From Macrostomum hystrix (Eukaryota; Animalia; Platyhelminthes): a stretch of 64,000 nt of DNA. Location of the stretch: contig CATNEN010000010.1 in the NCBI GenBank assembly GCA_950097015.1, positions 3,286,001 through 3,350,000 of the forward strand, written 5' to 3'. Shown here one piece after another: positions 1,331 to 2,035 of the stretch. Numbering within the stretch: position 1 is the stretch's first letter; every line of letters starts with the position of its first letter. The notes beneath the pieces are model-generated. The model made no database searches, had not been told where the DNA came from, and worked only from the letters and a program-made list of their open reading frames with translations. A program made the position numbers and the translations under genes.

Positions 1331-2035
1331 CTACAACCAGTAGCCGATTTTATTCCAGCGACCACGGCCCTTGCTCCTCCGACCTGCGCGACCTTTGATG
1401 TTCCAGTAGCCCCCGCCATTAATGGCGGTGTTTCTACCGTTGTTCCAGGTGTTTCCGCCGTTGTTCCAGGAGTTCACGTCATTATTCCAGGTGTTTCCTC
1501 CGTTGTTCCAAGAGCCCGCGGCAGTATTCCAGGTGTTTCCTCCGTTGTTCCAAGAGCCCGCGGCAGTATTCCAGGTGTTTCCTCCGTTGTTCCAAGAGCC
1601 CGCGGCTGTATTCCAGGTGTTTCCTCCGTTGTTCCAAGAGTTCACGTCATTATTCCAGGTGTTTCCTCCGTTGTTCCAAGAACCCGCGGCAGTATTCCAG
1701 GTGTTTCCTCCGTTGTTCCAAGAGCCCGCGGCAGTATTCCAGGTGTTTCCTCCGTTGTTCCAAGAGTTCACGTCATTATTCCAGGTGTTTCCTCCGTTGT
1801 TCCAAGAACCCGCGGCAGTATTCCAGGTGTTTCCTCCGTTGTTCAGGGCATTGCCAGTATTTCTCCAGACCATTTTTCCATTTGTCCTGGTCCAGCTATT
1901 GTCCAAATCAGAATTTGAGGCCATGCTGCTTCTCCGGTAATCGTTTCTCAACGGAGTTGAATCAACAGCGACCAGGATCAGCGCCAGTGCTGCCACTTGA
2001 AGCAGGCGTCTTGTGCAGCCGACTGCTGGGGCCAT
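1331..2035 (-). CDS. Secreted Trp/Asn/Gly-rich heptad-repeat protein (234 aa, unknown family)
   Basis: ATG in good context (accATGg). Hydrophobic signal-peptide-like N-terminus ([16 protein letters not shown]), then 19 W-initiated heptads ([21 protein letters not shown]) and a basic W-containing tail. AATAAA lies on the minus strand at about 1143-1148. Confidence 0.7.

Follow-up and report, generated by a model that had tools for sequence, protein, structure and literature searches.

A candidate gene for a putative secreted tryptophan-heptad protein, and its convergent sister gene, in the minisatellite-rich genome of Macrostomum hystrix

Sticker-and-spacer proteins form a functional class, not a homology class, and include FUS-type proteins and the N-rich prion domains of yeast; secreted coacervating materials, such as the foot proteins of mussels and the cement proteins of sandcastle worms, are comparable. 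The features compared are richness in Asn, Gly, Ser and Thr, a nearly uncharged chain, evenly spaced aromatic residues, and a basic partner or tail for cation-pi contacts. The predicted product of the gene described here (gene A) has all of these properties; it differs from these systems in that its aromatic residue is Trp and not Tyr, Phe or DOPA, its spacing is exactly seven residues, it is putatively extracellular, and it has no sequence homology to them. Two further systems with periodic or Trp-rich chains are relevant. The ice-binding protein of Lolium perenne is built from heptads of the form x-x-N-x-V-x-[GS] with 14–15 residues in each coil, and the combination of Trp with Arg or Lys is a signature of indolicidin-type peptides.

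The nearest analogues of A, recovered with the profile described below, are the sea-anemone proteins XP_031555061.1 from Actinia tenebrosa and KXJ07981.1 from Exaiptasia, in which a signal peptide, as is also predicted for A, is followed by approximately 15–40 heptads that start with W. These heptads are of the form W-K/N-x-D-P-Q-A, with N or K after the W, and their sequence is unlike that of the A heptads. In XP_031555061.1 they constitute an N-terminal module ahead of a pair of SRCR domains and a SUEL lectin domain, whereas A has no globular domain. We rejected the assignment of A to this W-K-x-D-P-Q-A/SRCR/SUEL type, as no Pfam domain is present in A and the flanks are dissimilar; the likeness is one of design only, and homology is not demonstrable from the sequences. 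This W-heptad module from a different phylum is itself uncharacterised, and the database names of the Exaiptasia diaphana entries (P0119/P0152) look unreliable.

Gene A and its predicted protein

Gene A lies on the reverse strand at positions 1331–2035 of the window (the whole 64-kb stretch of DNA that was analysed), where the list of open reading frames gives a single exon of 234 codons and a TAG stop (1331–1333), with the frame unbroken over all 234 residues. Residues 1–26 (1958–2035) resemble a signal peptide, with a basic n-region containing RR at residues 9–10, a 12-residue hydrophobic core with a mean Kyte-Doolittle value of 2.82, and a small-residue site, V-D-S followed by T-P, that is compatible with cleavage after residue 26. 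The assignment follows rule-based heuristics for charge, hydrophobic core and small residues at −3 and −1 and not a trained predictor; the N-termini of both A and its sister protein B have the n-, h- and c-regions that these heuristics describe. A non-repetitive spacer at residues 27–63 (1847–1957) contains an RR pair at residues 34–35 and two decayed W units, SWTRTNG and VWRNTGN.

The repeat array spans residues 64–203 (1427–1846) and begins with a single unit lacking W, LNNGGNT, followed by 19 W-initiated heptads (residues 71–203) in which W recurs at a spacing of exactly seven from residue 71 to residue 197. Nine heptads are WNNGGNT, six are WNTAAGS, three are WNNDVNS and one is WNNGRNT, and they alternate to give a 14-residue superperiod that matches the 42-bp tandem repeat in the DNA (TRF: 1443–1844, period 42, 9.6 copies, 91% matches, score 664). 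The array is followed by a basic C-terminal tail at residues 204–234 (1334–1426) with five R, three K and three W, which includes GRWNK, the unit of gene B. Degenerate units in the flanks are SWTRTNG and VWRNTGN, already mentioned, together with YWNIKG and RWNKIGYW. The first-pass annotation had reported a signal-peptide-like N-terminus, a spacer with an RR pair, 19 heptads with W every seven residues in a 14-residue superperiod, degenerate W-N units in the flanks, an R/K-rich tail and a downstream AATAAA, and we located each of these.

Mature A would consist of 27% N, 18% G, 10% T and 11.5% W, with no Cys and a pI of 11.2, and protein A has a mass of approximately 22.6 kDa. Only four charged residues occur within the 140-residue array. 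Dibasic pairs are restricted to residues 9, 34 and 219, with none between the units. The protein is thus predicted to be secreted, cysteine-free, unglycosylated, basic (pI ~11) and of low complexity.

Signals expected of a gene flank the reading frame on both sides. A TATA-box-like TATTTATAT at 2129–2137 on the reverse strand lies 102 nt upstream of the ATG, and no other ATG intervenes between the motif and this start codon of gene A; the corresponding positions of the motif are −102 in gene A and −71 in gene B. The start codons are in the contexts ACCATGG and GCAATGG respectively. Poly(A) signals are at +183 in gene A (AATAAA at 1143–1148 on the reverse strand, 183 nt past the stop) and +163 in gene B. 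TATTTATAT occurs five times in the 128 kb comprising both strands of the window (at 2129, 20887, 35407, 46570 and 46907), as compared with 0.3 expected from shuffled sequence; the other four sites are in AT-rich DNA and have neither an adjacent signal-peptide ORF nor an obvious downstream ORF.

Two features of the sequence are suggestive of constraint on the encoded protein, although both statistics are based on few observations and were in part selected once the data had been inspected. All four point variants among the interior units of gene A are synonymous third-position changes (P ~0.012), and mature A contains no N-x-S/T sequons where 3.8 are expected on non-redundant sequence (P ~0.009), despite the presence of nine N-S or N-T dipeptides. 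The repeat variants of gene B show no third-position bias.

The sister gene and a second copy of the locus

Gene B is located 686 bases before the start of the window on the forward strand, at C10:3284512-3285315 (L023:1512-2315), such that A and B are convergent on opposite strands and approximately 2 kb apart. It too is intronless, and it encodes a signal-peptide-like N-terminus followed by 28 heptads, most of which are W-N-K-D-G-D-R; the hydrophobic cores of the two N-termini have Kyte-Doolittle values of 2.8 (A) and 3.1 (B). Protein B combines the Trp spacing of A with Lys or Arg alternating with Asp, and has 62 basic and 48 acidic residues, a pI of 9.8 and no Cys. B therefore resembles A in its W-N-initiated heptads, absence of Cys, basic character, lack of introns, TATTTATAT motif and poly(A) signal, and differs from it in that its heptads are charged and its period is 7 residues (21 bp) rather than the 14 residues of A.

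The two proteins are paralogous, with 40% identity (BLASTP 1e-31), and the alignment is not confined to the arrays but also spans the N-terminus, a W-R-x-x-G motif that precedes the arrays, and GRWNK near the C-terminus. By a hand count the 21-bp units of the two genes agree at only about 12 of 21 positions, and so the W-N frame has been kept while the DNA has diverged. The first-pass annotation had named relatives that keep the DNA repeat without the reading frame as an outcome that would speak against its proposal, and B presents the opposite case. We found no further paralogues in the genome using the non-repeat N-terminal parts of A and B, and the repeat DNA of gene A is present only at the two copies of the locus described below. 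An ORF fragment with a LAPGDYHRFHSP motif, which we take to be typical of phosphatidylserine decarboxylase, lies about 4 kb upstream of gene B on the reverse strand (C10:3280449-3280883; L021:2449-2883).

Variants in repeat number had been proposed as something to look for, and the genome protein search recovered them: both genes are also present, inverted, on contig C33, where they differ only in the number of repeats. Outside of the repeats the two contigs are 99.5–100% identical, including the intergenic DNA, and C33 also has an essentially identical copy of a SPATA6 exon located 40 kb from the pair. A has 19 heptads on C10 and 27 on C33, a difference of four 14-residue units, and B has 28 and 23 respectively; the arrays are therefore length-polymorphic. 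In view of the near-identity of the two copies, including intergenic DNA and the SPATA6 exon, C33 most likely represents the other haplotype, with duplication in the very recent past as the alternative; because they are so similar, their comparison has no power to measure selection. At least the last 65 kb of contig C10 is inverted on C33 (C33:5005776-5048454 versus C10:3284512-3330566), with differing tandem copy numbers. Other genes in the window are ASPM and SPATA6, at some 20–40 kb from the pair, and a BRCT-repeat gene. The best database match of the SPATA6 exon is from M. lignano, at 78% identity, which places this animal DNA in a Macrostomum species distinct from M. lignano.

Minisatellite background and searches for relatives

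The periodicity of W in protein A is imposed mechanically by the tandem DNA repeat, and the genome has an abundance of such repeats. In the 64-kb window there are about 30 minisatellite arrays, most with periods of 15–42 bp and with 21 bp the commonest, and several unrelated arrays (window 1–64000, loci L004–L047) have a CTGTTAGAT-like core in common. Three of the six reading frames run through the gene A array without a stop codon. In such a minisatellite-rich genome, and with half of the frames open, periodicity and an open frame are weak evidence when taken by themselves; both are within what chance can provide, and the case for a gene must therefore rest on other evidence. What does go beyond chance is the presence of gene signals in the flanks and of a sister gene.

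The extent of the background is illustrated by a genome-wide search for a DNA pattern in which three W-N codon pairs recur at intervals of 21 bp, which gave about 3000 matches as compared with about 700 for a control. The approximately 100 matches that were listed, all on contig C1, are in noncoding-looking arrays, and the pattern is of no use for finding members of the family. A protein search of the genome with A and B gave about 100–135 matches, among which the only true ones are the C33 copy and the cross-match between A and B. About 40 of the other loci were inspected and rejected as kin, being unrelated 21-bp minisatellites translated in one frame or another; their repeat ORFs begin inside the repeat and have no unique signal peptide, with a single exception that is a clearly different SPFW/APFW peptide-precursor gene, described below. 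Many arrays in the genome thus yield accidental long W-heptad ORFs, and since they do so in several frames, findings of heptad proteins here have a high false-positive rate.

It is against this background that we consider whether gene A is itself such an accident, a 42-bp minisatellite that fortuitously lacks stops in this frame and has an ATG and hydrophobic codons beside it, with no functional protein. The roughly 30 minisatellites of the window with 21 bp as the commonest period, the ~3000 genomic pattern matches, the many arrays with long W-heptad ORFs, the three open frames of six and the failure to find a homologue are all in keeping with this. However, A and B both have a unique signal-peptide-like N-terminus, TATTTATAT, a first ATG in a favourable context and a poly(A) signal, whereas the chance ORFs elsewhere start inside their own repeat and lack such signals; the sister gene retains the W-N frame with diverged DNA; and the interior variants of A are synonymous and sequons are avoided. 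A chance origin consequently seems to us unlikely. The proposal of the first-pass annotation that this is a real secreted repeat protein and not a mere minisatellite ORF is supported at the level of sequence, both by the TATA box, Kozak-like ATG, signal-peptide-like N-terminus and poly(A) signal of gene A, and by the diverged neighbouring paralogue with its W-N frame, the synonymous-only interior variants and the avoidance of sequons. Gene A is on these grounds a well-formed candidate gene.

Searches for relatives in other organisms were performed with several methods. No Pfam family matches A at E<=10, and phmmer against PDB sequences gave no matches for A at E<=10 and only sub-threshold noise for B. 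A word-indexed search of 5.8 billion proteins returned one chance match only, and the exact A and B sequences are absent from a collection of 15 billion proteins. A profile constructed from the A and B proteins of both copies of the locus gave 648 matches when run against the full set of 1.84 billion representatives; none of the best 150 has the units or flanks of A or B, and these 150 are a mixture of unrelated heptad or low-complexity proteins, which come from frog, crayfish, snail, sea-anemone and metagenome sequences. The best score in the ESM Atlas, 0.79, is below the useful range and is to arthropod low-complexity clusters. We found no M. lignano homologue of A or B in a database that contains M. 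lignano proteins, and either none is annotated in that species or its annotation has missed the gene. The literature gave no paper containing the A or B heptad strings and nothing specific for Macrostomum. The authors of the first reading did not recognise the family, and this is borne out, with no true relatives in Pfam, in the PDB, or in the word and profile searches.

The product of gene A and competing readings

On balance we favour the interpretation that gene A is a real, intronless, lineage-restricted Macrostomum gene encoding a putative secreted Trp-heptad low-complexity protein of the sticker-and-spacer kind, a reading we regard as probable on the sequence evidence. The composition of A, with a polar low-charge spacer and aromatic residues at a fixed seven-residue spacing, is that of a sticker-and-spacer chain, and it is from composition that we infer a polymer-like action. 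The protein would be exported from the cell, and its evenly spaced Trp residues could act as stickers, making pi-pi contacts as well as cation-pi contacts to the tail of A itself and to Lys and Arg of B; the polar Asn/Gly spacers would leave the chain flexible and rich in turns. The arrays of both genes may grow and shrink by slippage of units, which would account for repeat numbers that differ between genome copies. Given an almost uncharged N/G/T/S/A chain, fixed Trp spacing and a cationic tail, a self-associating secreted gland product is favoured, and it may form a granule matrix, mucus or rhabdite material, or a seminal or egg-coat component, possibly together with B.

The first-pass annotation had suggested a different architecture, a beta-solenoid or amyloid-like stack of the 14-residue superperiod with ladders of Trp and Asn and a rigid structural, ice-binding or mineral-binding role. 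Mucus or rhabdites, adhesion and eggshell were among the other roles that it put forward, and all of these roles are guesses. The strict superperiod would suit such a stack, as would N-G-G, a strong turn former that is flanked by W, and the three WNNDVNS units fit the ice-binding heptad of Lolium perenne. The AlphaFold2 model of A from the single sequence, run on the monomer as that annotation had proposed, has short paired hairpin-like strands around the N-G-G turns every 14 residues and no helix outside of the signal peptide. However, confidence in the model is poor (mean pLDDT 47.8, pTM 0.22, with no residue at or above 90), and protein B alone is predicted to form long helices (pLDDT 70), despite a helix-poor composition with much N, D and G; the predictions for the two sisters are thus opposite, and both were made with no alignment depth. 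We take the strands in A as a hint of hairpins and not as a confident solenoid. The N-x-V pattern occurs in only three of the 19 heptads, there is no PDB or Pfam match, and two Trp residues in each 14-residue coil would be hard to bury. The model gives the solenoid no support, nor is the proposal of Trp/Asn ladders supported, and we consider this reading unlikely. In sequence A does not conform to the heptads of a Lolium perenne-type beta-solenoid ice-binding protein, since 16 of its heptads have no Val. A classical heptad coiled coil was rejected, since position 1 (W) alone is hydrophobic, with G, A or D at position 4, Asn and Gly make up 45% of the chain, and no helix is predicted outside of the signal peptide. 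A and B are probably flexible, turn-rich low-complexity chains.

A further explanation is that A is not a material at all but a cationic Trp-rich antimicrobial, or a fast-evolving seminal-fluid protein that acts on microbes or on the mating partner. Mature A and B are both basic (pI 11.2 and 9.8) with 11–13% Trp, a combination of Trp with Arg and Lys that is generally associated with indolicidin-type peptides, and the difference in repeat number between the two copies fits fast evolution. The prostate of M. lignano offers a possible context, in that 31 of 76 prostate-limited transcripts have no BLAST match and 38 of 65 predicted proteins have signal peptides (PMC5977470), so that orphan secreted genes are typical of that gland. 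The distribution of charge is less accommodating, because the 140-residue repeat core of A is near-uncharged and only the 31-residue tail is cationic; moreover, the repeats of A have no dibasic processing sites that could free short peptides, unlike the SPFW-KKR gene. We accordingly view a role in defence or in seminal fluid as rather improbable.

Returning to the favoured reading of a self-associating secreted protein, an extension of it would have A and B co-expressed as a two-component extracellular material that condenses through pi-pi and cation-pi contacts, with repeat number tuning its mechanical or adhesive properties. Here the uncharged W-N polymer, whose tail is cationic, would come from A and the W-bearing polyampholyte from B, and the allele-varying repeat number would be generated by the minisatellite machinery of the genome. 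We offer this as a speculative elaboration with a small chance of being correct.

Secreted tandem-repeat proteins confined to a single lineage are well known, and A is unusual among them for its 11–13% Trp, its exact heptads and its convergent sister pair. If expressed, A and B are compact proteins (~210–240 residues each) with 11–13% Trp and exact periodicity, and no other protein with their repeat units or flanks was found in the public protein sets searched. They should be easy to make recombinantly and could be used to probe how aromatic spacing relates to self-association in extracellular materials. The locus also illustrates how coding repeats can be built and resized where ~21-bp minisatellites saturate a genome, and it is a caution that minisatellite mutation has produced most of the heptad ORFs here as artefacts.

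We also excluded the possibility that A is a repeated-peptide (neuropeptide-like) precursor, because it has no basic residues between its units. The one other heptad gene that stood apart from the chance ORFs does look like such a precursor, neuropeptide-like or pheromone-like, as judged from its sequence. It is a 416-residue ORF at C38:26159861-26161111 (L028:1862-3112, forward strand) with a clear signal peptide, no Pfam match and a 21-bp coding repeat that gives about 50 tetrapeptides separated by KKR, 30 of which are SPFW, 15 APFW and four SLFW. It is similar to gene A in combining a predicted signal peptide with a W-containing seven-residue (21-bp) coding repeat in the same genome, and differs from it in having tribasic cleavage sites between the units, where A has none.
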